From NCBI GenBank assembly GCA_009103225.1, contig RHPI01000772.1, positions 685,312 to 749,311 on the forward strand: a stretch of 64,000 bases of DNA, written 5' to 3'. The stretch comes from Chlorokybus atmophyticus (lineage: Eukaryota > Plantae > Mesostigma and Chlorokybus algae). The first letter of the stretch is position 1. Each line of letters begins with the position of its first letter. The notes beneath the pieces are model-generated. The model did no database searches. It was not told where the DNA came from and saw nothing but the letters and a program-made list of their open reading frames with translations. Both the position numbers and the translations under genes were made by a program. Below are positions 1,808-64,000 of this stretch, piece after piece.

Positions 1808-4800
1808 ATGCCCCGCCCGGCCATGGGGGTGGTGACAAAGGCGGCGCTGGCGGAGTTCCAGCAGACGGGCAAGCTGACCGTTCCCGCTGTTGGCACGGCA
1901 GCCAACGCCAAGCGCTTGCTGTTCGAGCTTTGCCTGGCTGTTGTAAGTGTACAGAAGAAGCTGATTTTGAAGTGTAGTGTACATACATATTCTGCGAATG
2001 GTTTTCAGCGAGAAGTAACCTGTGTAGCTTCATCCAACAGCAGTGCATGCTGGTCGTGTGGTATGCATTGTGTGAACTTCAAAAGTAAAACCAGCTGTGT
2101 ATTTTCAAGTTTTGTGTATCCAATGGGAAGGGAATTCATATACAAAGCCTTATCAGTGACTTGTCATGTTGGCGAATCTGAAATTTGACCACTTCACTGC
2201 TTCATTATTGGTCATGCGCTCGTGCAAGTTGCTTGTTGACTCATGTAAGGGTTATGCTGCTTAGCACGCACATCACAATTGGTTTGCAGCTGTGTAGTTT
2301 GATGTAATGTTATTGCCGTGTTGTTGGTTTAGTTTGTCCGCTTTCATCCTTGTGATAGGTCATTGTTGTAACCTGTTGATTTCCGTAGATTTGCTGCATC
2401 AAACTGCTAACAACATCTACTATTACAGTCAAGGAGCGACATACCTCCAGATATAATTCCCTCGCTGCTGACAACCTTCGATTTCACAAGCATCTCCCCA
2501 CCGCTGGACGTGCCTTCTGTGCTAGCGGATGCACTTGCGCACCTGTCAATCGAGGTATGTGCTCAGGCACAACGCTAGTATACAACATGAAGCATGTATG
2601 CCACACATGAGTGCACACATTTACCTGCAGTGTTGGTTGGTTTCTCATTGTGTGCATTGTGCAGATGGACGCTGCATCGGCACCCGAGGCTCACGCTAAC
2701 CTTGTCAAGCTGGTGAGCTGCTGACTTGCAGAGCTGAAGCTCACGCAAAGAGATCCACATGATCGAGGCCGGCAGCGCCCGCGGGCACTGCCAGACAAAC
2801 CCTCCTGCGGCTCTGTTTGATCAACGTAAACGCGGCAGGTCAAGGAGTTGCTGAAAGCCAAAGTCTTCAAGCCTGTGTTCTTGAAGGAGCGCTTTGAGGT
2901 TAGTGTCAAATTCTAATGAGCCAGTGTTTGTTTCGCCGTGCCTTGTTTTGGTGTACCTAAAGTGTGTGTGCAATTGGTTGCAGTTGGAGTTTTTGGAAGC
3001 TTGTGGGCTTGACGTTGCCGACAAATTTCACAAACGCGAGGTAGGCCTCTGGTTTGGGCAACATCCTTTCACCTTCTGTCTACTTACTCGACCAGAATTG
3101 CTGTTTTTCAAAGCTGAGGCATTGCATTGCTACGCAGATACGAGTCAACACTAGGCAGCTGTACACACAAACCAAGTTCAATCTGCTGCGGGAAGAGAGC
3201 GAAGGATTTGCCAAGCTGGTGATTGCTTGATTGCATAAATGTTGTACCCAATTGCAATGGCAAAGCCGCTCTGCTGGAAGGCTTGACTTTGTGTGCTGCG
3301 CAGATCACACTCCTTAACAATCCCGAGGCCTGGACGGCGCCCACCGTTGCACTCCAACGGATGCAATCGCTCATTGGCTACTTTGACCTAGACCCGAACC
3401 GAGCGCTTGACATCCTGCTCGACAGCTATGAGCTCCATCTACAGAAGACTGGTTACTTGCAACTGCTGCCTGCATTCAACAGGGCAAAAGTGTGCCACGT
3501 GCTTGGCTTCAACTTTGAGTACTACAAACGCCCTGACGTGGCACAGTCCACGCCCGAGCTGTTGTATTTGCTCGCAGCTGCTGTGATAAAGGCGGGTCAG
3601 GTGGACATAGACAGCCTCTATGGTCATCTTTCACCCGCTGATGCGGACGCCAAAGAGGCTCACGCGCTGGAGCTCAATCGAAGATTGGATATCGCCAAGC
3701 GGATCGGCGTGACCAACCTGCTTGCTGCAACCGATGAGGATGCTGCTGCATCGGCAGCGAAGCAGGCGGACGAGGCTGAAGAAGCTCTCACGGCCAAAGT
3801 GGAACCCTGGCAGGAGGACAATCAGAAGCTCGGGCTGCTTTGCGCGTTCCTCAAGTTTGATGATTGGCCGCATGCAGTGCAGTTGCTGGACAGGCTTTCG
3901 GACCTTGACCCCGTGTCGTATCCTCCGGTGGCAGCCGCGCTGTTCGCCCTGATTGAACGTACAATTAAGCCGTTGTACCGGCGCATCGCGCCATTTCAGA
4001 ACTCAGAAAAGAGCAGTACTAGGCCGGTGCTGCAGTGGCAGAACCTGGTAGCCATGCTGCGGCACGCCGGTTATTACTTGCACCAGAACATCGTTCTGTT
4101 AGTCAAAGTGGCACGCGTGCTTCGCGAGCGGCTCGTCACGCAAGGCGCGGTGCCTGTGGCAAACATCTCGTCTGCCAAGGTTTCACCGCAGGTATCTCTT
4201 CGCGTGCACGCACCCACAGACGCCCACCCACATGCGCACAGACACACACGCGAATGCAGGCACGCGGGCGCACGCTCGGGGCATGTCCCCCCCCCCNNNN
4301 NNNNNNNNNNNNNNNNNNNNNNNNNNNNNNNNNNNNNNNNNNNNNNNNNNNNNNNNNNNNNNNNNNNNNNNNNNNNNNNNNNNNNNNNNNNNNNNNNNNN
4401 NNNNNNNNNNNNNNNNNNNNNNNNNNNNNNNNNNNNNNNNNNNNNNNNNNNNNNNNNNNNNCCTCCCCCTGCCACAACACACACATACACATACACATAC
4501 AGCGCAGCGTCATATTTGCACGCGCACTGCCTGACCAGGTCCCTTAACAGGTGCGGTCCGCACGTGCCGATGTGGAGGCAGCGCTCGGAAGTTGTCTGCT
4601 GCCATCACTTAGCTTGATTCCAGCCAATGCTGGGGTCGTCTTTGAGGTGTGGGAAGTGGTCAAGTTGCTGCCGTATCAATCTAGATACCGCCTGTATGCC
4701 GAGTGGAAGACAGCTGGCGGCGATAAAACGCCAGCATTGGTAGCAGCAAGAATTATGGCTGTACAGGTGATGCCTTACATTGGTGCATGCAAGACAAGCA

Positions 4801-16584: not shown

Positions 16585-18995
16585 CTAAGCAGCTGCGGTG
16601 GAACCGGTTGGAGGAGCAGGAGTCACTACAACCCCGCCAGCTGATGCAACCACTGGAAGCAATCGTGCCTGCTGTTGCTGCTGTGAAGCGCTTCCAACTT
16701 CTGCAATCTCGCTCTGATCAATCGATGAATGCGGCAAGGGGCCTTCCATGAGTTGGGCAACTTGCGTTATTGCGGCTTCGTGCGGGCTGCGCGAAGACAC
16801 GGGTGTCATTAAACTTACTCAGTGAATGAGGGAGCCGGTCAAAAACATGCACCAATGTTTCCAGCAACGTGATGACTATGCCCTACACGGCACATATGCA
16901 CCACACGCCCCATACCTATGCGCACACACACGCACACACACGCATGTACGCCACCAAATAACAAGCAGGAGCACACTTGCACGCACACCCGCAACAAAAG
17001 CATGTAGCAAGTTGCTGGGCTGACATGCCATTGCTGGGCTGATCATGTGATTACCTTGGATCGCTGTCCAGTCCCATGGAGTCACCGGCAGATCCCCAAG
17101 AGGCAGACACGGCTGCCGCAGGCAACCCGACTAACTCCGACGCATCCTGCGTGCTGCCGCTCGCATGGTGCGCATTATTGGCGTGATCCTGTGAGTTTGT
17201 AAACAACAGTGATAACTATGCCCAGTACGCGCATAGTACTCACACACAACCATTTGACGACCACTCGACTGTATCGGTGGTCCTCACCTGCAGAGACTGC
17301 CATATGGCTTCCATCACCATGATGTCCTCCAGGTTCAAATCTAGCTCGGCATCCGGCCTGCCAAGGTAACAGGTTGTTATCGGCTGAAGCATGCCATGAA
17401 ATAGATGCATCGTGCTGCACACAGCAATAAGCACAAAACGCATGCATATGCAACAACACTGATGCATACCACAAGATTTGACCGAAAGGCGCATGGCGGG
17501 TCTCATACGCGGCAGCAAGCTGGCGAAGAGAAGGGGACATCGGCAGCCTGCTAAACAACCGACTTGAGTTTGAGCAACACATGCATTGTACCATGCTGAT
17601 AAATTGCACGCATCTCATTACAACCTGCAAACCAGACGTGCTTGGATGAAAGCATAGTTGCATTGGAATGCGTCGTGTACCTCATCGGGCGTGGGCTGCC
17701 AGTTACGCTCAACGGTTGTCTTGACCCGGGAAGCTCTATGGGAGGCCACCTCCGCCTTTCAGGTTGAGAGTAGAAATACAGCGTGTCGAAGGTAGACGAG
17801 GTTGCCCTCGAAGCGCGCTGTGGAGTGCCCTGCACAAGTGTGTGAGAGTTGATATCTCACTTACACAACGTGGGTGCGTATGTGTCCTGCAAGAGGAAAG
17901 CATAACAAACTGACCTCGCCGCGGGCTTGCCTCTCTTCCTGTTCACGCGCGCGCTCTGCAGCATGATCGATTTCAGCCTGCGCCTCCTCCTGGCGCGCGC
18001 GGATGCGAGCCTCGATGACACGCTGTTCCTCCTGCTTAGAAAGCTATAGCAACTCAAAACATGAGAAAACATGTAATACACTAACCGCGAAAGTGTGACA
18101 GTTATAATTGTAATTGTACCACGCGGTCTTGGCCTTTTTCTTCTTGCGATCGCGCGCCGCGGAACTCCACAGCATAGCTCGGCGCTTTGCAGAACGGACA
18201 CTGCGCTGGTCGGGACGACTGCGGGCTTCTGACTTGCAGATAGCACTCTGCAGTGTGGGTATTGCAGCCAAACTCAGCAAGGTTACATGCAAGAGTCTAA
18301 GGAATCAAAGGAACAAGCAACAACAACTCACCGGTGCAGATGCCTTTCTTGCAGCATTTGGACCGGTTCAAGTATGGGTAATGCTGCGCACAAAAAAGAG
18401 TGAAAATACAACACGGCATGAACTCTCAACGCAAATTTGTTGAATACCGCACGCACTGGCATGCAAATGACTTGAGAAAGAAAAAAAAAGGTGGGAAGAA
18501 AACAAAAAACCTTTGGTGCGTGGCACTGCTTTGCGCTGACACTAGGCATGAGACTGTCATGACGCACCTCAAGAATATTCAGATGACAACAACCCATGCA
18601 CGAGAAGCTGACACTATCTCTGCAGGTGTTGGATAGCATATGCTTAGTGAGCACATGAAGTGTCAAACAATTCAGTGCGCGACTTACATGTACCGAGCTC
18701 GTGCAATTGCACATGCATAGCAACCTCTGTAACTCAGCGTCCCCATCTGGTCTGCATGAGATAATTACGAGAGCAATTGTTTTGTGCGTACCAGGAAGCA
18801 TATGGGGCAGTCTTCAAGGTTTCCCAGCACCTCTTCGAGTCCCGGGTAGCACGGGGCGAGCTTGGCGTCGAGGATGAGGCGACGCAGCTTTTTCGGGTCG
18901 AGGTCCTTGTGGGGGTACAGCCCGGAGACGCGGGTGTAGCGTTCCTCAACGGGGGGACCTCTCGTACGCCGCAAACCGCCCAACTTGTTGCCCAT
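16585..18995 (-). CDS. RING-type E3 ubiquitin ligase, GW2/DA2-like
   Basis: MGNKLGG...[37 protein letters not shown]...CPICFL|[17 protein letters not shown]|ECYLQV...[16 protein letters not shown]|[11 protein letters not shown], and later [15 protein letters not shown], all GW2/DA2 hallmarks. The 3' end (TAG 16585-16587) is less certain. Confidence 0.9.
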
Positions 18996-38139: not shown

Positions 38140-40830
38140 CTAGTTGCACATCTTGCCAGCGACCCATGCGTTGTTGCTGGTGTCAAGGTGAGTATCGCCG
38201 TAGCATGCATGTTTTCCGCAACTGAAAAGCTTGCACACCTGCAGTCAGCAGATGTGAGACACGTGACATGCGCGCATACGTGTGCGCGTGTGCGCGTGTG
38301 TGTGACAGGTGTTGCGCACATTGCTGCAGCGGCCGTTGCCGGTGTAGTATGCCCAGTGTGTGCAGGCGAGGTTGGTCTTGCACTTGTGGCAGCAAGTGTC
38401 AGCGTTGTGGATACCGTTGATCCACTTGATGCGTTGCAGCAGGGGAGTCTTCCACAGCCCCGTGGACACTGGCCTTGAGCAGAAGGATTTGCACACCTTG
38501 GTAGCGTTGAGACGCTTCTACACAATAGAGTTAGAAACACCGATCTAGTAAGCCAGAGCAAGTTGCATGCACGCTTTCACACGCACACATGCACTCACGC
38601 ACGCACGCACCACAGCATGTAAACTGACAGCCACTTTAACGTATGTTCATAGAAGCCATGTTCACAGGTGCAGTTGTACCCGCCAGTCACAGGCTGGCAG
38701 CGGCCATTGGAGCCGCATGGGTTGGGCTTGCAGACACTGTGCACACAGACAGTAAGCAAAGCAATGATGGCATGCCATGGCAAGTCTAGTCTCACAAGCA
38801 TGTGCACAACTACCCTCTCTACGATGCACTCACCATCACGAGGAGGTGGTGCGGGCAGTGATGTTGGCAATGGGGGGGATGTTGGGGGTGNNNNNNNNNN
38901 NNNNNNNNNNNNNNNNNNNNNNNNNNNNNNNNNNNNNNNNNNNNNNNNNNNNNNNNNNNNNNNNNNNNNNNNNNNNNNNNNNNNNNNNNNNNNNNNNNNN
39001 NNNNNNNNNNNNNNNNNNNNNNNNNNNNNNNNNNNNNNNNNNNNNNNNNNNNNNNNNNNNNNNNGGGTCGTGGCCGGCAGCTCCTGAGCGAGCAAATTGA
39101 CAGGTATGAGTCGATTACAGCCGCACCAGTAGTAGACACGACAATACTACCACCTCAAACACACCTCACAGTCGTCTTTTAAACGACACACGCCCGGTGT
39201 CGCATAGACGCCATACGGGCAGGGCGTCCAGTCCTGCTTGCCCCAACACACGTTATATAATTCAGCCTGACACACGCCAGTTGGACAGGGTTCCCATCCT
39301 GCTGGCTGTAACAGATATCTGCACAAATTGGTTGTGGGTGAGAGACTATGAGAGACCACAGAGACACACTACACACAGGCACACGACACATGTACATGCG
39401 AGTGTCCACACCACACCTTGGACGAAGATGTAGAAGGTGCAAGCGATTTCGAGCACAACGGACCCATTGTCGCGCTGGAAGGTCTCCCGTACCTTGAACA
39501 ACGGTCTCTATCAGTGACAGCAGGGGTGAAGCAGGGGTGAATATGGCTGTGGTGTGGAGGGGTGAAGCCACGGCAACCCCTGCGGGAGGGGTGATGTTGA
39601 AGGCTGCGTCCGGGGGGGAAGGCGTGATGGAGTAGAGAGGCGTGATGTCCCTGCCCGCGCTGGCCGTGGCGGTGATGCCAAAGGTGATGACATTCCCCAC
39701 GGCGACGTTACACCATATTCCAAAGGCTTCATCAAGTTCGCACGCAGGTGGGAGAGGATCATCGAAGGTGCACGCGGGGGGGCGCGCGGCTGGGGGATCC
39801 ACAATCTTCACGATAAAGTCCAACGCATGGTTGGCAGGGTTGTTGCCGGCGTGGAGCTCCTCGATTATTATCTGCAAGGAGTACAACTGCCCAACCACTG
39901 TCCCGTCCGTGCGCCACGTGAGCGCGCACGAGGGGGATACTGTGAGCGTGTTGATGGTGCTCGTGGTGTTGGGTGTGAGGGACTCATCGACTGTGGCACG
40001 CCGGCGCGTGAAGGAGTCCATGTCAGGATCCGACACCAACAGCTGGATGGTGTTGTCCAACCCCGGGCCGTTCACCTGGACGGTGGGCGGCAAGGTGGAG
40101 ACCACGCCGCCGGTGTTGCCGTTGTTCATGTCGATGACAGTCCTTGCCCGCAAGTAACTGCAGCTGTCCTCAGGGTTGGTTTGGCTTCTGACTCGACAGC
40201 AATTGGTAAAAGACACCGTGTACGGGCCCGGATTGCCGTACGCATGTGTGATCTGCCACATGGAAGGCGTCAGTCAGGTTCGAGCTAAGGGTGTGTATGT
40301 GTACGTGCGTGTGCGCGCATGCGCGCCAGGGTGCATGTGCGTGCACGCGCGTGCGTGTGTATGCGTCTGACCTGAGCCTGGCCGCTTAGTACGTCTCGTG
40401 CATGGTCAGACCCTGTGACAGTAAAGTGCAAGTTAACCGTGCCCCCGTCGCCTAAGTCGATGTTCTCATTATACATCGTGACATTGTTGCCGATGGAGGG
40501 GCAGCCGTATGGCCTTCGCTCCAGCTCCAGCTCTGGGGATCACTATGGTAAGGGTGGTGTGCACAGAGGCAGCAGGTTCACATGGCACTGCACTACTTAT
40601 AGTCACCAGGGTATGAGCTATGTACCTGGTTCAAGGTTATGATGACTTGATGATTATTTCCAGTTGGCGCTGGTGTCTTTGCGCCAGGACGTGAAGCTGC
40701 TGCGGCAAAGCTTCGTGTCTGGGTCTTGGGCTGTGACGCACGTGCCAGCATGCATGGCCAGCGCTACAATGACAACAAGCCACCACCAGGGAGTCGTGGT
40801 TGCTGACGCTCTGCCTGGTTTTATGATGCT
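38140..40830 (-). pseudogene. Frameshifted gene for a secreted modular protein: signal peptide, large beta-rich domain, Cys-rich repeat, Pro-rich linker, EGF, PAN/apple
   Basis: Signal-like WWWLVVIVALAMHAG; beta domain ..DLGDGG..HAYGNPGPYTVSFTNCCRV..; EGF CKPNPCGSNGRCQPVTGGYNCTCEHGF; PAN-like CCHKCKTNLACTHWAYY..C; stop at 38140-38142. Lesions: in-frame TAA at 40654-40656, an 11-bp tandem duplication at 39520-39541, and a 1-nt loss near 39295 that breaks one of two C-x4-D-W-x-P-C-P-x-G-V repeats. Confidence 0.7.
38891..39064. other. Assembly gap (N run) in the Pro-rich part of the pseudogene
   Basis: Run of N flanked by G-rich sequence. Confidence 0.99.
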
Positions 40831-50651: not shown

Positions 50652-53200
<2,549 letters not shown>

Positions 53201-56363: not shown

Positions 56364-56410
56364 CCATATGTCACCATATGGTACACATGGCAGCATATGG
56401 TGACATATGG
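56364..56410. repeat. Perfect 17-bp inverted repeat (hairpin, 13-nt loop) upstream of RepHel
   Basis: ccatatgtcaccatatg (56364-56380) and catatggtgacatatgg (56394-56410) are exact reverse complements. Confidence 0.95.
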
Positions 56411-56484: not shown

Positions 56485-56745
56485 GGATGGTGACGGCGAG
56501 ATTGGCGGTGGCGTGAATGTATTGAGGACTATGTGTCGGGAATGTGGCAGTTACATTACTGGGAGTTGAGGTCGAGGTTGCTCTATTATTACGTCAGTTT
56601 GGAGACGCTTTGTGAACACTGGTTGGACGGTGACGGAGAGGTTTGCGGTGGTGCAGATGTAATACGAACTCTTAATATCCGGCAAGTGGCAGCTAATCAT
56701 GTTGCTCTCTGTCACGTCAGGTTGGAGACGCTTTGTGAACACTGG
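56485..56745 (+). repeat. Diverged tandem duplication (about 123-140-bp unit x2) with coding-like character
   Basis: ttggagacgctttgtgaacactgg is identical at 56599-56622 and 56722-56745. Both units translate to DGDGE[IV]xGGxxV[LI]RT and LETLCEHWL. Confidence 0.85.
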
Positions 56746-56749
56746 CTGC

Positions 56750-59700
56750 AGTGTACCTAATGGCTTTTTATGTGGCAAAGTGTACAATGGGATTTTGTTT
56801 CAAAAATGCCGTGCTGCTCTATGTGTGGCTTTGTTCAATTTTATGCTCTCAATGTTTCCCCGATGCGATGTACGTCCTCGTCCGAATCAGCTTACAAAAT
56901 CGCCAATATTTTATGGCTGAACACACGCAACGTCAGCAGAAGTAAATTATCTGTGACCGGTGTCGTCAAGGTTCTTCCCGCTCAGCTGACTTTGCGTTCC
57001 ATAGTGGTGTATACATTTGCCAGGTGTTACAGTCACATCCTATAGACGTGCAGTTGTTGTTATTGTTGAACACGACCACTGTTTTACGCAACTTGTACAA
57101 CCCATGTGGTTTTCCATCTGGTTTGGTTCAACAGTTGATTATAGTGAATAGTCCATTCATTCATTGAGATCAGCTAGGAAGTTCTTCACTTAATTGTGTC
57201 AAGAAGGTATTGGTTGAGCTCGTCGTATCCAACCCGTTGGTTCAAAAATACAGCGCTCTATATGAGCAACCATTTGGTTCGTGGCATTCCCATTGTGAGT
57301 TCCGCTATAATACAAAACATTGTGTCACGTCACCAAGAACGCAACCCACTCAATGTTGTCGACAGTAACGCACATCACTACGTGGTGACTACGTTGTTAT
57401 CAATTCCCGTTCGCAGCAACTCAAATCCATGTTGACGTTTTGATGCGCGCTGGCCATATGCAGTTACGTGATCCGCCCATTCAACTTGAATTGCAAGTAC
57501 AGTTCAACGGCCAGTACAATGTCGCTAATGTCACCATTGAAACAGCATTGTTTCCCATGCTATTTTCAGTTGGCCATGGTTTTTATGATGGCAATGTGTA
57601 TCAAAGATTGTTGGACAATCTCATGGTTCGCTGCTCGCAAAGCTTTTCGCTATTTACGTTGTACAAGCCTTACTTGCTACTGATGTATCATGTTCGACAG
57701 TTTATTACCATGGTCAATAAGTGTCGCAAAGTTGCAAGCGAAGAACATATCCATAAATATCTACAAAAACACCATGATGCGACCATCAATGACGCTATTC
57801 AACGTGTTGTTAACATTGAGTGCCAGGTGATGTGACTGGATCTCCCAATTGGCATCGACAACAGCTTAATGATCTTCCGTGTTTGGTACAATACTAGGGC
57901 ATGCCTACTCTTTTTATTACCCTGACTGCTGATGAAGTCCAGCACTAAGTTTTTACAATTAGCAAACTTACAGCGCGTGTTGCAAAAAATATCAACATCG
58001 TTGTCGTGACAAGATGCTCCAATTGAATGCGCTTATTCATTTTATCATGTATCTAAATTCTTTAAAGAGTACATTGAACAATGCGATATCTTGGGCCGTG
58101 TCATGCATCACGTGATCAGGTACGAAACACAACATTGTGGATCGTTGCATGCACATATTATGCCATGGCTGCACCCTAATGACATTGAAAGCGTGTGCAA
58201 TGAGATACTAGCGTTCATTCCAGGCAATTTTGATGCAAAACAACAACAATCAATTGTGCCATGTGATGGTAAGTTGGAGATTTTGCATGAGTATGTGGTT
58301 CAAAGCAAATGCAGCGATATTGGAATAGGCTGTCGCGCATACAACAAACAATGTGACATGGAATTTCCATATTCAGTTCCATATTCAGTTAAAATGAACA
58401 CAAGCCCCAGTTCAACAACCATATGCACAGGTATGAATATTATCGGCCACGATACTGCGATCGCGATGTAGTTCCATATCATCAAGTGCTATTGCTGTTA
58501 TGGGGTGAACATGTAAATGTGTTGTGTGTGACAGTCATGGGAGCAAGTACCTTTTCAAGTACCAAGTATCAAAAAGATGGAGCCTATTAAAACTCTGAAC
58601 GACGCCATTAATGCCAATGTCTTAGGGCTTTAAGGTTTTACACTCAACGCGCTATGTGTCATTGTATTTGTTTAAACAAATTGCTCCTGCGGAGGCAGCA
58701 TTAATCTATTAGAAATTCCGATTTTTCAGATGTCGGGTACTGTCACATATGATACACGTTCTACAACAACACGAGCGTACATTGCAACATGCTAAATAGA
58801 TTCTGGTGTACCCAGTTGACATATACTATGCTAAGCCAAAAGAATTGAAGCAAATTACTTTGTACAAGCAATTTTGCCGTTTTGTGCAACATGAAAAACA
58901 CAAACCTGCTCCCAGAGGTAATGTACGTGCTTTGCTTGATTGATTTGGTGGCAACTTTACGAACTCAGCACGCCGCGCATTATATGATTTTCAGACTATC
59001 ATCCCACATACCATATTGAGGAATATTACTTTAACCTGCTATTACAAAGTGTTGTTTTCCGCAACGAAGCTGAGTTATTACCCCCCAGCAATACCGCAGG
59101 CAAGTATCTCTTAGAGTGTGTGCAGCGTGGTTTAATTACCGACACCACACGCACATTGCATACTCACATTATGGAATATGCCCAGCAACACCTATATAAT
59201 GATGTCAACATCCAGCAATTGATTACTTCCATGGCCAGGGAGGTTGATGCTGGAGAACATCAAGAATGTTCAGCAACAGCAACAGATGAGTACATTACTG
59301 GTGCGTGTGACATCCAAGAATTTGCCAATATATCCATGTGTACAAGATAAAAAAACAACAAACAATATCCAACAGAATTTGTGCACAAATAATGGGCTTG
59401 CATGTGATATTGGGGTGTCCAGGAGCTGGCAAAACATATCTGATCAAACACATTACACATCAATTGCGCACAGCAGGTTTACTAGTTTTGTTGAGCGCAA
59501 CAACCGGAGCAGCTGCTGCACGACTGAGTCCATATGCGCAAACTGCACATACCAATTCTACTATTCCAGTCGATGGTCAAATTGTATCATATTTTAGTGC
59601 TACGCACGACATATACAAACGACTGGCAGCGTGTCATGTTTTTGTAATTGAATTTTCCATGATAGCAGGGCGATTTTGTAACTTGATGTGCCTACGTATA

Positions 59701-60640
59701 CGGCAAGTTCATATATGAGGTTTTTGGAACCACGTGGCTGTGGTATTGGTGGGAGATCACAAACAACTTCCTGCAGTTTGCTATCATTAAACAGAAGACA
59801 ATACCCAAGTTTGTACCAGGTGCCACATTTTCGAATGTCGCATTTGGTCAATTCGTGTGCAATATGAACTTGCAGTATCAGTGCGCCATGTTTCAGACCT
59901 TGAGTTTGCCAAATTTTTGAGTAATACCCCATCCACTGTCCCCACATCATCAGCTATCTATTCAATTTTAGTCTGATGGTTGGTTTCCGATCAGTTGCTG
60001 AGGCAAATTCTCGACAACACAATAGTGTTGTGTTCCCATGTAGAGGACGTTTTGCAGTTTCATAACATGGTGTTGCATCAGCAGTTCTCACAATCCCAAA
60101 TCCATCAGGTGCAAATTCATACTAATGCTGCTCTAGTGCCAGAACTACAGGACTGGTTGCAAAAACCCAAGTTCAACTTGTTGCCGCGTGTTGCGGTTGG
60201 AGCAAAGGTGTTGATTCTGAAAATTATGAGTTTGAACGATGGGGCTGCCAATGGTGCTGTAGCAACAGTTCAGAAACTTTGCATTTACAACGGCAATCTG
60301 ATCAGTATGTGTGTGAAAGTCGCCTCAACACACGACACACACGCACGACACATAAGCTCATATGGGTACGACGCACAACCCACAAACACACCACTTGTCA
60401 AGGCAAAACCTATCTCACAAATACATTTCCATTGCAGTTAGCCTATGCAATGACTGTTCACAAGGCCTAAGGGACCACATTAGGACACAATACTCCGGTT
60501 CACATGCAGAGTGCATTTAGACCTGAATTGTGGTATGTGGCGCTCTCACTTGTGACCAATCGATCACTGTTAAGCCTGACACGACTGTCAGAGCCTCAGG
60601 AAATGACACCGGTTCCGTGGGATTATCTGCAAGGTGAGTT
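56750..60640 (+). mobile_element. Decayed Helitron RepHel (HUH Rep + PIF1/SF1B helicase) with frameshifts and premature stops; element ends not defined
   Basis: ALFPMLF..GHG, GSPNWH..DL..GMPTLFITLTADE (Rep motif 1, 57901-57936), RYETQHCGSLHAHIMPWL (HUH, 58148-58156), VVPYH..LWGEHVN and KYLFKY (motif 3, 58548-58562). Helicase: GCPGAGKT (59413-59436), SATTGAAA, GDHKQLPAV, VGAKVLIL..DGAANG, FPLQLAYAMTVHKA*G and YVALS. Confidence 0.93.
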
Positions 60641-60643
60641 CAT

Positions 60644-61050
60644 GCAGTCACACGATACTGTGGCGCAGTTCGTTCGAACATGGCAGCACATGGTAGCATA
60701 TATGGACATATGTTGCCATATGCAGATCATCTGCATATGATATATGTTACCATATGTTAACGTATGGTGGAGGATCAATGTACACATGATCGCCAATGTA
60801 CGTCCATGTAGTCACTTTCCATGATAAGTATTTTCAAATTGTTGCATCGCACGCAGTCACGTACTGTGGCGAAGTTTGTTCGAACATGGCAATATATATG
60901 GTAGCATATATAAGCATTTGTTGCCATCTGCAGATATGTATTACCATATGGTAACATATGGTGGAGGATCGTCGTACACATAATCGCGCTCGCCAGTGTA
61001 CTTACATGTAGTTTTTCCATGGTAAGTATCATAAAATCGTTGCATCACAT
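60644..61050. repeat. Diverged tandem repeat, about 209-bp unit x2, with internal palindromes, in a putative intron after the helicase exon
   Basis: Units start gcagtcac at 60644 and 60853 and share tactgtggcg..gttcgaacatggca..atggtagcatat..tatggtggaggatc..ttgcatc. Palindromes: catatgcagat-c-atctgcatatg (60717-60739) and ttaccatatggtaa (60941-60954). Donor CAAG|gtgagt near 60634. Confidence 0.85.
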
Positions 61051-62165
61051 GTGTAATCGTTGGATTGAGTAGCCATTTGACAAGCTGCATGCAATAGGGT
61101 GCATGCTTACTGATTGGTGATTAGTGCAATGTGACCATTGCATATTATTACAGGGCTTCAAAATACAAAGCTGAAACCAGCGACGGCACTAGTGTCTTTG
61201 GTGTCATCCTGCTCTTATTCACTGGCGCTCGTGAGAGCGTCAACCTCGTCTACTTCCACTTAGTCTGTCACATCCAGGTACGTAGCTGAGTGTGCAGATA
61301 TTGGCAGCGGAATGATGTCGACTGTGTGCCTACCCAGCCACCAGCAACCATTCACTTACATTGGTTATGCTGTGCAGCATGGATTCCGATGCTTAGGAAC
61401 TTAACAAGTTGAACTCGCATCTGTTTAATGATGAACTTGGAATTAAACGCCAACGCACCAGCAGCGGCAGCAGAGGAGGTTTTGGACGAGCATTGTCTGC
61501 AAAGCAAATGTGGTCATGCAACAACGCTGGTGTCACTCCCGACAAATTAGAAGGACTGCTCACTAAGACCGAAGAAGATAAGTTGATCCGCGCTGCTAAA
61601 GAACGGGCTTCAAAATTCCGCGTCAAAAATAGGATGCCATTGCCCCAGGTACATAATATATGCAACTCTTGCATACATTAACGCTGTTCTGTTAGGAGCT
61701 TGTATCTTCTACATCCGCAAGATGGGCATCAACGTTAAAGATGAGTCAAAGCGCCAGGTCGCATACAAGTTATGAGACGCCTAGCTTTGCCAAAACAACC
61801 CGGATCTTCCTGACAGTGCAGATCCGCTTCTGGCTAATTAAGTATGAATGCACTTCTTGCTAGTGTTAGATTATTACATTGTGTGTAATATTGCAAAGGT
61901 ATGTGTAACACAGAAATGCATCACACAGGTCTTTGAACTGGTACACATTCGCAAAGTGTGCATCTAGGATGCAGCTCACCTCATGTCTGCGGGTAAAGCT
62001 GAGAAGATCCTCAACCAGATCAACAAAGCTGATTTATGTAGAGATGTTGGCTGCTAATGTTCCCAATCATTAGATAGACGTACAGTTGATTCCATGTGTA
62101 ACACATTCACATAAATATTATTCATGTAGTCGTGTTAATGACAACATAACAACTGCATGCTGCAG

Positions 62166-62545
62166 GTGGCTGAGAATGTGTAGTCCGCTTCATTCAGCAG
62201 CACGCAATGCAACCCCAAACAATCTGCGGGCAGCAGCACGCTGTGCAAAAAACCGTCAGTAGATGAGCTGGATGGTGCGCGTTGCATCTACAAACTCACG
62301 TACCTGAAAAGTGGAAAAGTCTACATTGGTTAAAGCAGCACCCCCTACGTCGTTTTATGGAGCACAAGCGATCTCCTCCCAAGAAATTACATAAATAAAA
62401 CACTTGGTTTATCAAAAGGATTTCAAGAAACAAGCAGTGATGCATGTTTTTGATGTAGCATAGAGCAAACAACTTTCAGATCGGTTGGAAGCAAAGTACA
62501 TTGCACAGTGTGACTAATGTGGCAAAATGGGTTATGGTATTGATC
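62166..62545 (+). pseudogene. Degenerate GIY-YIG endonuclease coding remnant
   Basis: In frame from the acceptor tgcag|62166: ..DGARCIYKLTYLKSGKVYIG*S (62283-62333). After a frameshift LRRFMEHKR, then ..LEAKYIAQ..GY (62485-62535). These match the GIY-YIG, Arg helix and Glu elements. Confidence 0.8.
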
Positions 62546-62829
62546 ATGGCAGTCTGAGTAGATTCAGGGCATTTTGGGCACGACAACGCATTGGTAATAG
62601 CTGGTAGTAGCTTTGGGAAATACAAAAGGAAGCGTTCTTGAGTATCCAATTCACATTAGTCCTTACGCATTAACATGTCATTGCGTTCTGCTCTGCATGT
62701 AAATCTGCGTTACGATTGTTGCATTGGCAGAGAGTGAGTCTCGCACACAGCACCAACACACACCAGCATACTATGCATCTATTGCTGGGTTGGCACATTA
62801 GTTAATCTTCCCACACAATATGTGCGGCA

Positions 62830-64000
62830 TACAAGTGGATGCGTGTTTCTAGTAACAACATAGCCATACAGATATCAACAGATCACGGGAAGTATTCAGT
62901 TGACACCAATTTTGACACATGCAACTCAAGAGCAAAACAGGTACCATGCAATACAGGGCTACTCAGCCCGGGTGGCTGCGAAGGCCAAGCACCATCAGCA
63001 CCGGAATTGTGTTTATTAACATCCTCATCATCATCGTCACTGTTGCTCAATTCAAATACGGGGAGATCGGGAGTCATTGCACCATGTGGTGGGCGATATA
63101 TAAAAATAAGTTAAAAGCAGCGGCAAAAAGAACACTCCATTAGAGGATGAGGTCGTGTGCGCAGCTTCTTCAAGCATTAACGACACAATGTGGCTCCGCA
63201 ACATGGCATTGGCAGCAACGCTTTCACTAGTTTCTGTTCGCAGCGGATTCCATGTGTTATCTTCATTGTCTACACGCGCTTGCCCTTGTAGTCCTGGCGA
63301 ACATGCTGCTGCATTTCTTCGGTTGGTGTTGCTTCACGCAGCAACGGAGCAACTGTGCAGAGGTAGGTGCAAACCTTCTCCCCAAGTATTTGGTAAAGTT
63401 TCAGTTGCTCCTGCTTGTTATCATCTTTGCGGTTGAGGAGCAATACCTGGTACACCAACCAGTAAACACCAAAGGGTTACAATTGATGGCGCACGCAGGC
63501 AATAATTGTAATTGTTGTGCGTTAAGGTCGATCTTTTTCAACATGTCTTTTGCCAAGCTGTCCAACTCTTTTTGGGTGACTTCCATTTGATGCTGGAAGC
63601 TATTAAACTGCATGCCATTGGGTTCAACGCGCTAACGGAATCGCCACTTAACCGTGTGAAGACGCAGAACGCTTGTCAACTCTAAAATCTGCAGCAGCAT
63701 GTCAATTGCTGAAAAGTTGTTGGAGGTTTGAATAGTGCACGAGCAGACACCTTCGTATTTCGTGCGGCAATCGTCTGGTTGGCTTGGTCATTCTGGCCTT
63801 GCAAACGCGCCAGTTTTGCATTGTTGCCCTCATTTTGTTGCTGCAACCCGATGGCCCTGCGTTGCGCTTCTGCCAGCTGCTGGCGTAAGCGCAAGATGCT
63901 TGCTGCGTCTGCATTTGTGACGTTTTATGTCATTTTGGCGTGCTCAGCATGCTCATCGGGTAATGCGCATTTTAGGTCAATAAAGCGTTGTTCTGCAGCA
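62830..64000 (-). pseudogene. Degenerate coiled-coil plus RING-like gene remnant convergent with the GIY-YIG exon; runs off the window
   Basis: LRQQLAEAQRRAIGLQQQNEGNNAKLARLQ and EVTQKELDSLAKDMLKKIDL (coiled coil); PMPCCGATLCR*CLKKL..ECSFCR near 63215-63118 (RING-like Cys spacing with an in-frame TAA); acidic SDDDDED patch. Confidence 0.5.

Follow-up and report, generated by a model that had tools for sequence, protein, structure and literature searches.

A stretch of 64,000 nt from Chlorokybus atmophyticus (assembly GCA_009103225.1, contig RHPI01000772.1, positions 685,312–749,311 of the forward strand; hereafter ‘the window’, to which all unprefixed coordinates refer) probably contains, from ~56.4 kb to at least 62.6 kb and possibly as far as its end, a dead Helitron-like transposon of the green lineage. 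In this reading, a first unit, the RepHel gene, ends near 60632 and is followed ~1.65 kb downstream by a second, a separate and co-oriented GIY-YIG nuclease gene of the I-TevI type. The RepHel and GIY-YIG genes of the window are both real, and both are pseudogenes. The pairing of RepHel with GIY-YIG is shown here across six diverged families; a precedent in a single family, HelenSM92, is already known from the HELIANO paper's account of it (PMC11417382).

The RepHel pseudogene extends over 57450–60632 (+ strand; start approximate), as defined by tblastn with full-length relatives, by Pfam and by the coordinates of its motifs. Rep motif I (LFITLT, 57910–57927), the HUH motif (SLHAHIM, 58142–58162) and the two-Tyr motif (KYLFKY, 58545–58562) are followed by a PIF1-type superfamily 1 helicase part (59311–60632, +) with Walker A (GCPGAGKT, 59413–59436), VLVGDHKQLPAV (59743–59778) and LAYAMTVHKA (60438–60467), which is the succession that distinguishes Helitron-like elements. 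All three Rep motifs and the PIF1 motifs had been reported in an initial annotation made from the sequence of the window, and each could be located, with a Pfam PIF1 match in addition. Full-length RepHel relatives aligned collinearly from ~57450 to 60617–60632 (E 1e-30 to 1e-74), and Pfam recognised PIF1/AAA_30 in the piece 59338–59718 (E 3e-9 and 8e-10) and, weakly, the tail of Helitron_like_N in the piece 58091–58471. Identification as Helitron-like therefore follows from the motifs, from collinearity with relatives of 1200–1600 amino acids that carry Helitron_like_N and PIF1, and from the Pfam PIF1 match. The intact transposase open reading frame (ORF) of an autonomous copy is absent: the three Rep motifs are in three different reading frames and the helicase motifs in two, and the collinear tblastn chain, with full-length relatives as queries, changes frame five or more times and meets eight or more in-frame stops. 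The feature had originally been drawn from 56750, and its RepHel homology begins near 57450 instead. Just upstream of that point is a 49-bp direct repeat (88% identical; 56577–56625 and 56701–56748). A word search with the helicase piece 59977–60438 gave no match, although the search was length-limited and the blank weighs little.

The GIY-YIG nuclease domain pseudogene (62283–62560, +) is recognised by the profile score of a read-through, its pieces also being the top tblastn matches. The motif pieces CIYKLTYLKSGKVYIG (62283–62330), RRFMEH (62348–62365) and LEAKYI (62485–62502) occupy three frames, one apiece; the frame shifts near 62331 and again near 62396, there are stops at 62461 and at 62515, and CIYKLTYLKSGKVYIG runs into a TAA. 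The initial annotation was thus right that an exon-like stretch carries these three motifs, and wrong that it reads in frame. Membership of the GIY-YIG superfamily calls for GIY and YIG 10–11 residues apart and then, in order, Arg, His, Glu and Asn, and the domain can be placed there; Tyr, Tyr, Arg, His and Glu are kept in the window, and the position of the conserved Asn is Gly (GYG). As had been observed before, the Cys pair that many Penelope endonucleases have between the two motifs is missing. When X was written at the two frameshifts and the two stops, the read-through scored 46.9 bits (E 7e-13, 92 positions aligned) against a profile of RepHel-linked GIY-YIG ORFs, compared with 6.5 bits for the best of 2000 shuffles and at most 6.5 bits for all other segments of the window. 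The path was chosen visually, following the relatives, so the score is somewhat inflated, but not by 40 bits. Pfam matched neither the single GIY-YIG pieces nor the single proposed exons, these pieces being too short.

Linkage of the two genes is not peculiar to the window. An exhaustive protein search with the window's helicase piece returned 134 matches (best 35–44% identity), and the contigs of these relatives, designated here by L numbers, were examined. In 5/5 independent metagenomic families with ≥2 kb of flank, a GIY-YIG ORF is present downstream of RepHel on the same strand, at 0.9 kb from the RepHel stop in L005, 2.0 kb in L002/L006, 2.2 kb in L011, 2.3 kb in L012/L013 and 2.7 kb in L009; in the remaining metagenomic relatives other than L007/L008, the contigs carry too little downstream DNA to show presence or absence of the nuclease. 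Two of the downstream ORFs pass Pfam PF01541 (44.6 and 40.9 bits, cut-off 22.6; E 1.8e-11 and 2.6e-10). L007/L008 can be counted as the same element type as L006 and L009, because their nuclease occurs together with an ORF2 module common to those two. This module (L006:5132–5602, L007:143–496, L009:6698–6955) is positioned between RepHel and GIY-YIG in one subclade only, has no Pfam match, and is undetectable in the window, L005, L011 and L012.

Pairwise identities of RepHel and GIY-YIG gave a Spearman rho of 0.65 (pairs not independent), and the pair L011 and L012 was recovered in both the RepHel and the GIY-YIG trees. The five metagenomic families with a GIY-YIG clustered in the helicase tree (support 70), apart from a Volvox/Edaphochlamys clade. 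Pfam detected no reverse transcriptase on the window pieces or on the called genes of GIY-bearing relatives. Since the order and strand of RepHel followed by GIY-YIG recur in five families, with no reverse transcriptase nearby, comparison of these loci supports assignment of the nuclease to the Helitron and not to a nested foreign insertion. This recurrence also upholds the original proposal of a rolling-circle transposon carrying a second nuclease. The annotation had further held that RepHel copies consistently lacking GIY-YIG, or a GIY-YIG with termini or a reverse transcriptase of its own, would betray an independent insertion; neither was seen in the metagenomic GIY-bearing subgroup, and the linkage is not universal.

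As to the type of nuclease, the Tyr, Tyr, Arg, His, Glu and Asn positions were invariant in a six-sequence alignment with only 26–30% identity to its first sequence. The closest solved structure to a profile of six nucleases was the catalytic domain of I-TevI (PDB 1MK0, E 5e-8; also 1LN0), whereas SLX1 was matched far more weakly by the same profile, over the N-terminal GIY-YIG half (E 0.01–0.04). TIGR01453, the group I intron endonuclease family, was matched by 5/6 nucleases, below its cut-off (35 vs 56 bits). The nuclease ORFs, which end 15–25 residues past the Asn, contain the catalytic domain alone, of ~100 residues; no linker, zinc finger or helix-turn-helix DNA-binding region of I-TevI was detected in them. 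The genes are accordingly not I-TevI-type homing endonucleases as such, the match being confined to the catalytic domain and the context being a transposon and not an intron. Nor do they fit a Penelope-like element, which would have an adjacent reverse transcriptase, or a Helentron, which would have an apurinic/apyrimidinic (AP)-type endonuclease: Pfam found no such domain (Exo_endo_phos) on the window pieces or the relatives' called genes. Retention of the catalytic residues, as read from the alignment, argues for selection on nuclease activity, without showing the purpose of that activity.

It had been suggested that RepHel and the nuclease form one Rep-Hel-GIY-YIG polyprotein, with a splice donor near 60634 leading through three or four small exons to a GIY-YIG exon. 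The suggestion has some appeal: a consensus-like donor (CAAG GTGAGT, 60630–60638, +, located by inspection of the sequence) does stand at the end of RepHel, and AG/GT-bounded segments do come after it, with the GT/AG sites reported before found near 61153/61277, 61397/61648, 61696/61898 and 62166. Most of the relatives' GIY-YIG ORFs, moreover, have no ATG of their own and must be joined to something upstream, and the ORF that follows the RepHel stop is in the RepHel frame in L001 and L009. The relatives nevertheless assign the junction a different role. Nine related RepHel ORFs stop 2–5 residues past a conserved P-x-P motif, exactly at window 60632, their C-terminal peptide being conserved up to the stop and their last residues aligning at 60617–60632; L005, for example, reads KPVPSQYLQ and then a stop codon, where the window reads TPVPWDYLQ and then GGT GAG. 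The proposed donor therefore occupies the position of the ancestral stop, and while the donor sequence is there as described, its role as a donor is not sustained. GGTGAG itself holds an out-of-frame TGA, which may be the displaced ancestral stop, consistent with a small indel in this indel-rich copy.

A GIY-YIG motif was found in 0/134 helicase relatives, including ten full-length proteins of 1240–1608 amino acids; in eight of these ten, the C-terminus and the end of the helicase alignment are no more than ~6 residues apart. In every relative the GIY domain is preceded by an in-frame stop. Within the window, the exon proposed from 62166 meets a TAG at 62181–62183 and does not read in frame into the GIY-YIG motifs, and the segment 61696–61898 has stops in all three frames. 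With the nine junction stops, the lack of any fusion among the 134 relatives and the stops in the proposed exons ranged against it, extension of RepHel by splicing into a C-terminal GIY-YIG is rejected as very unlikely. This comparative evidence against splicing is consistent with two separate genes, the nuclease being encoded by an ORF of its own downstream.

Two other accounts accept separate genes and differ over how the nuclease came to be there. One is an independent nested insertion, in which a Penelope-like retroelement, or else a homing endonuclease of the free-standing kind, came by chance to lie beside a dead Helitron; GIY-YIG nucleases are typical of such elements, and the 1.6 kb between the two genes shows no conservation with the relatives. 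That five other families should show the same linkage, and that no window piece or called gene of a relative should yield a reverse transcriptase domain, makes such a coincidence barely credible. A more serious contender, though still an unlikely one, is that the nuclease is a passenger: an ancestral Helitron would on one occasion have captured a host or homing-endonuclease gene, which has since been carried along with no role in transposition. Gene capture is what Helitrons are known for, and ‘captured’ is the word that the HELIANO authors use of HelenSM92 in describing that family (PMC11417382); related Volvox and Edaphochlamys RepHel loci manage without a GIY-YIG. Against this, the nuclease has kept its place and direction in six families although RepHel identity among them is only 30–56%, and six catalytic residues are invariant in the five intact families; a useless gene would be expected to decay or vanish over such divergence.

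Belonging of the nuclease to a Helitron-like transposon is hence the reading that we prefer, and several observations weigh against it. Decay of the window copy has gone too far for its own gene structure to be read, no second copy of the element was found within the 64-kb window, and the termini of the element were not found. In the helicase tree the window falls outside the group of five families, on a long branch and weakly placed (support 52). A tblastx comparison of 60.6–64 kb with the relatives gave nothing significant besides GIY-YIG, which leaves the spacer between RepHel and the nuclease unconserved. L003 has no GIY-YIG in 1.7 kb of flank, and none is present within 10 kb of RepHel in Volvox and Edaphochlamys; the nuclease is therefore not needed by all related Helitrons. 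At one Volvox carteri locus (L016, GL378324.1), the C-terminal part of the RepHel helicase is present twice within 16618–18896, in inverted orientation (16618–17634, +; 18896–17874, −).

How the nuclease is expressed was considered from the relatives. No ATG precedes the GIY motif in L005, L006, L009 and L012, which is to say in most GIY-YIG ORFs, and the nuclease is therefore probably joined to upstream coding sequence. In three diverged elements, a basic ORF rich in Lys, Arg and Ser ends in an in-frame TGA 5–17 codons before GIY-YIG, in the same frame (L006:6690–6760, L007:1570–1625, L005:5120–5190). The context of this stop in L006 and L007 is TGA-CTA, which favours stop-codon read-through in eukaryotes. 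The nuclease is probably produced by read-through of the conserved in-frame UGA, or else from a final exon in a gene downstream. A candidate upstream exon is present in the window itself, an AG/GT-bounded open segment of 84 codons, basic and charged (61397–61648, +); it had no Pfam match, and a word search with 61397–61678 found nothing, although that search was length-limited and its blank weighs little. At the other end of the spacer, four families (L001:6404–6420, L005:4258–4270, L006:4703–4720, L009:6167–6175) have an ORF with its own ATG, whose start ranges from 4 nt ahead of the last base of the RepHel stop codon to 9 nt past it. Such positions suggest very tight and possibly polycistronic gene packing.

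Among known systems, the nearest is HelenSM92, a family of type 2 Helitron-like elements (HLE2) of Sphagnum magellanicum that, in the words of the relevant passage of the HELIANO paper, ‘captured and transposed’ a GIY-YIG domain (PMC11417382). Like the element described here, it is a green-lineage Helitron-like element with a GIY-YIG besides RepHel; it is described there only as one family with a ‘captured’ domain (PMC11417382), whereas here six diverged families have the nuclease as a separate downstream ORF. The initial annotation had left it to the literature whether the architecture was already catalogued, and the HelenSM92 GIY-YIG is in print (PMC11417382); literature searches that paired Helitron, Helitron2 or Helentron with GIY-YIG gave no further description besides HelenSM92. 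HLE1 and HLE2 are told apart by their place in a RepHel tree with reference elements and by their termini, either 5′-TC...CTRR-3′ with a 3′ hairpin or short asymmetric terminal inverted repeats with a hairpin at each end and a TT target; the single decayed copy in the window has a hairpin at 56364–56410 and related palindromes at 60750–60961. Helentrons, which are HLE2 with an AP-type endonuclease, resemble the element described here in being rolling-circle transposons with a second nuclease besides the HUH nickase, and their AP endonuclease, treated in the introduction of the HELIANO paper (PMC11417382), probably has an accessory role. The fold there is Exo_endo_phos, however, whereas here a GIY-YIG is encoded in a separate ORF and no AP endonuclease was found.

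The other comparisons concern the nuclease domain. With I-TevI and the group I intron endonucleases (1MK0/1LN0, TIGR01453), it shares the catalytic domain and, in the relatives, the six conserved positions, but no linker, zinc finger or helix-turn-helix was detected, there is no intron, and scores remain below the TIGR01453 cut-off. Penelope-like retroelements, too, are mobile elements of eukaryotes that use a GIY-YIG endonuclease; here, by contrast, the partner is RepHel, there is no adjacent reverse transcriptase, and in the window copy the Cys pair between the two motifs is missing. Likeness to SLX1 amounts to the weak profile match of the N-terminal GIY-YIG half (E 0.01–0.04), a match much weaker than that to I-TevI, and the RING-type finger fused in SLX1 is absent from the nuclease ORF.

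The sequence surrounding the two pseudogenes has features of its own. Upstream of RepHel is a perfect hairpin with 17-nt arms (CCATATGTCACCATATG / CATATGGTGACATATGG; 56364–56410, strand unassigned), which may be a structure internal to the element or a terminal one. The spacer after RepHel contains two tandem copies of ~210 bp (60641–61049), 74% identical and rich in CCATATG palindromes. Palindromes of the CCATATG type flank the RepHel gene, in the upstream hairpin and in the tandem units, and occur nowhere else in the window: the five occurrences of the motif CCATATGKYWMC in the 64 kb, where 0.08 would be expected by chance, are confined to the hairpin and to 60750–60961. Among the relatives, shared hairpins flanking RepHel showed no consistent pattern. 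Beyond the nuclease and convergent with it, a candidate third gene is made up of coiled-coil-like ORFs (62980–63999, −), with a decayed Cys-rich, RING-like stretch (63114–63269) and an acidic VFELSNSDDDDED stretch (63021–63059). Pfam gave weak coiled-coil matches on the minus-strand pieces and confirmed no RING at 63114–63269, and a regular-expression search found no intact RING in the examined loci. Elsewhere in the window, a long (GA/CT)n microsatellite (51380–51650) reads as RERERE... or SLSLSL... ORFs, and there are two assembly gaps (N runs; 4297–4461 and 38891–39064).

If the transposon moved as its genes suggest, RepHel, with its HUH nickase and PIF1 helicase, would carry out the rolling-circle (‘peel-and-paste’) steps of HUH nicking and 5′–3′ unwinding. 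The GIY-YIG protein would then act as an accessory nickase, nicking the target or the opposite strand after RepHel has acted, and its nick would favour integration or second-strand synthesis. By analogy with the AP endonuclease of Helentrons, this is the most likely role for the nuclease. A broader and more tentative possibility is that GIY-YIG-bearing Helitrons form an old and coherent subgroup of the green lineage, from chlorophyte-like algae via Chlorokybus to Sphagnum. In these, the I-TevI-type nickase would be a working second transposition enzyme, parallel to the AP endonuclease of Helentrons, and possibly unusual in its expression, through read-through of a conserved in-frame UGA (in a UGA-CUA context) or through trailing-exon splicing.

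The window copy itself is dead, one more degraded example of a known but barely described kind. The wider interest is in the pairing, for the integration of Helitrons and the synthesis of their second strand are still poorly understood. That diverged families have kept a nuclease beside RepHel points, like the AP endonuclease of Helentrons, to some step that may be poorly served by RepHel on its own, and the conserved pairing offers a testable handle on Helitron transposition.

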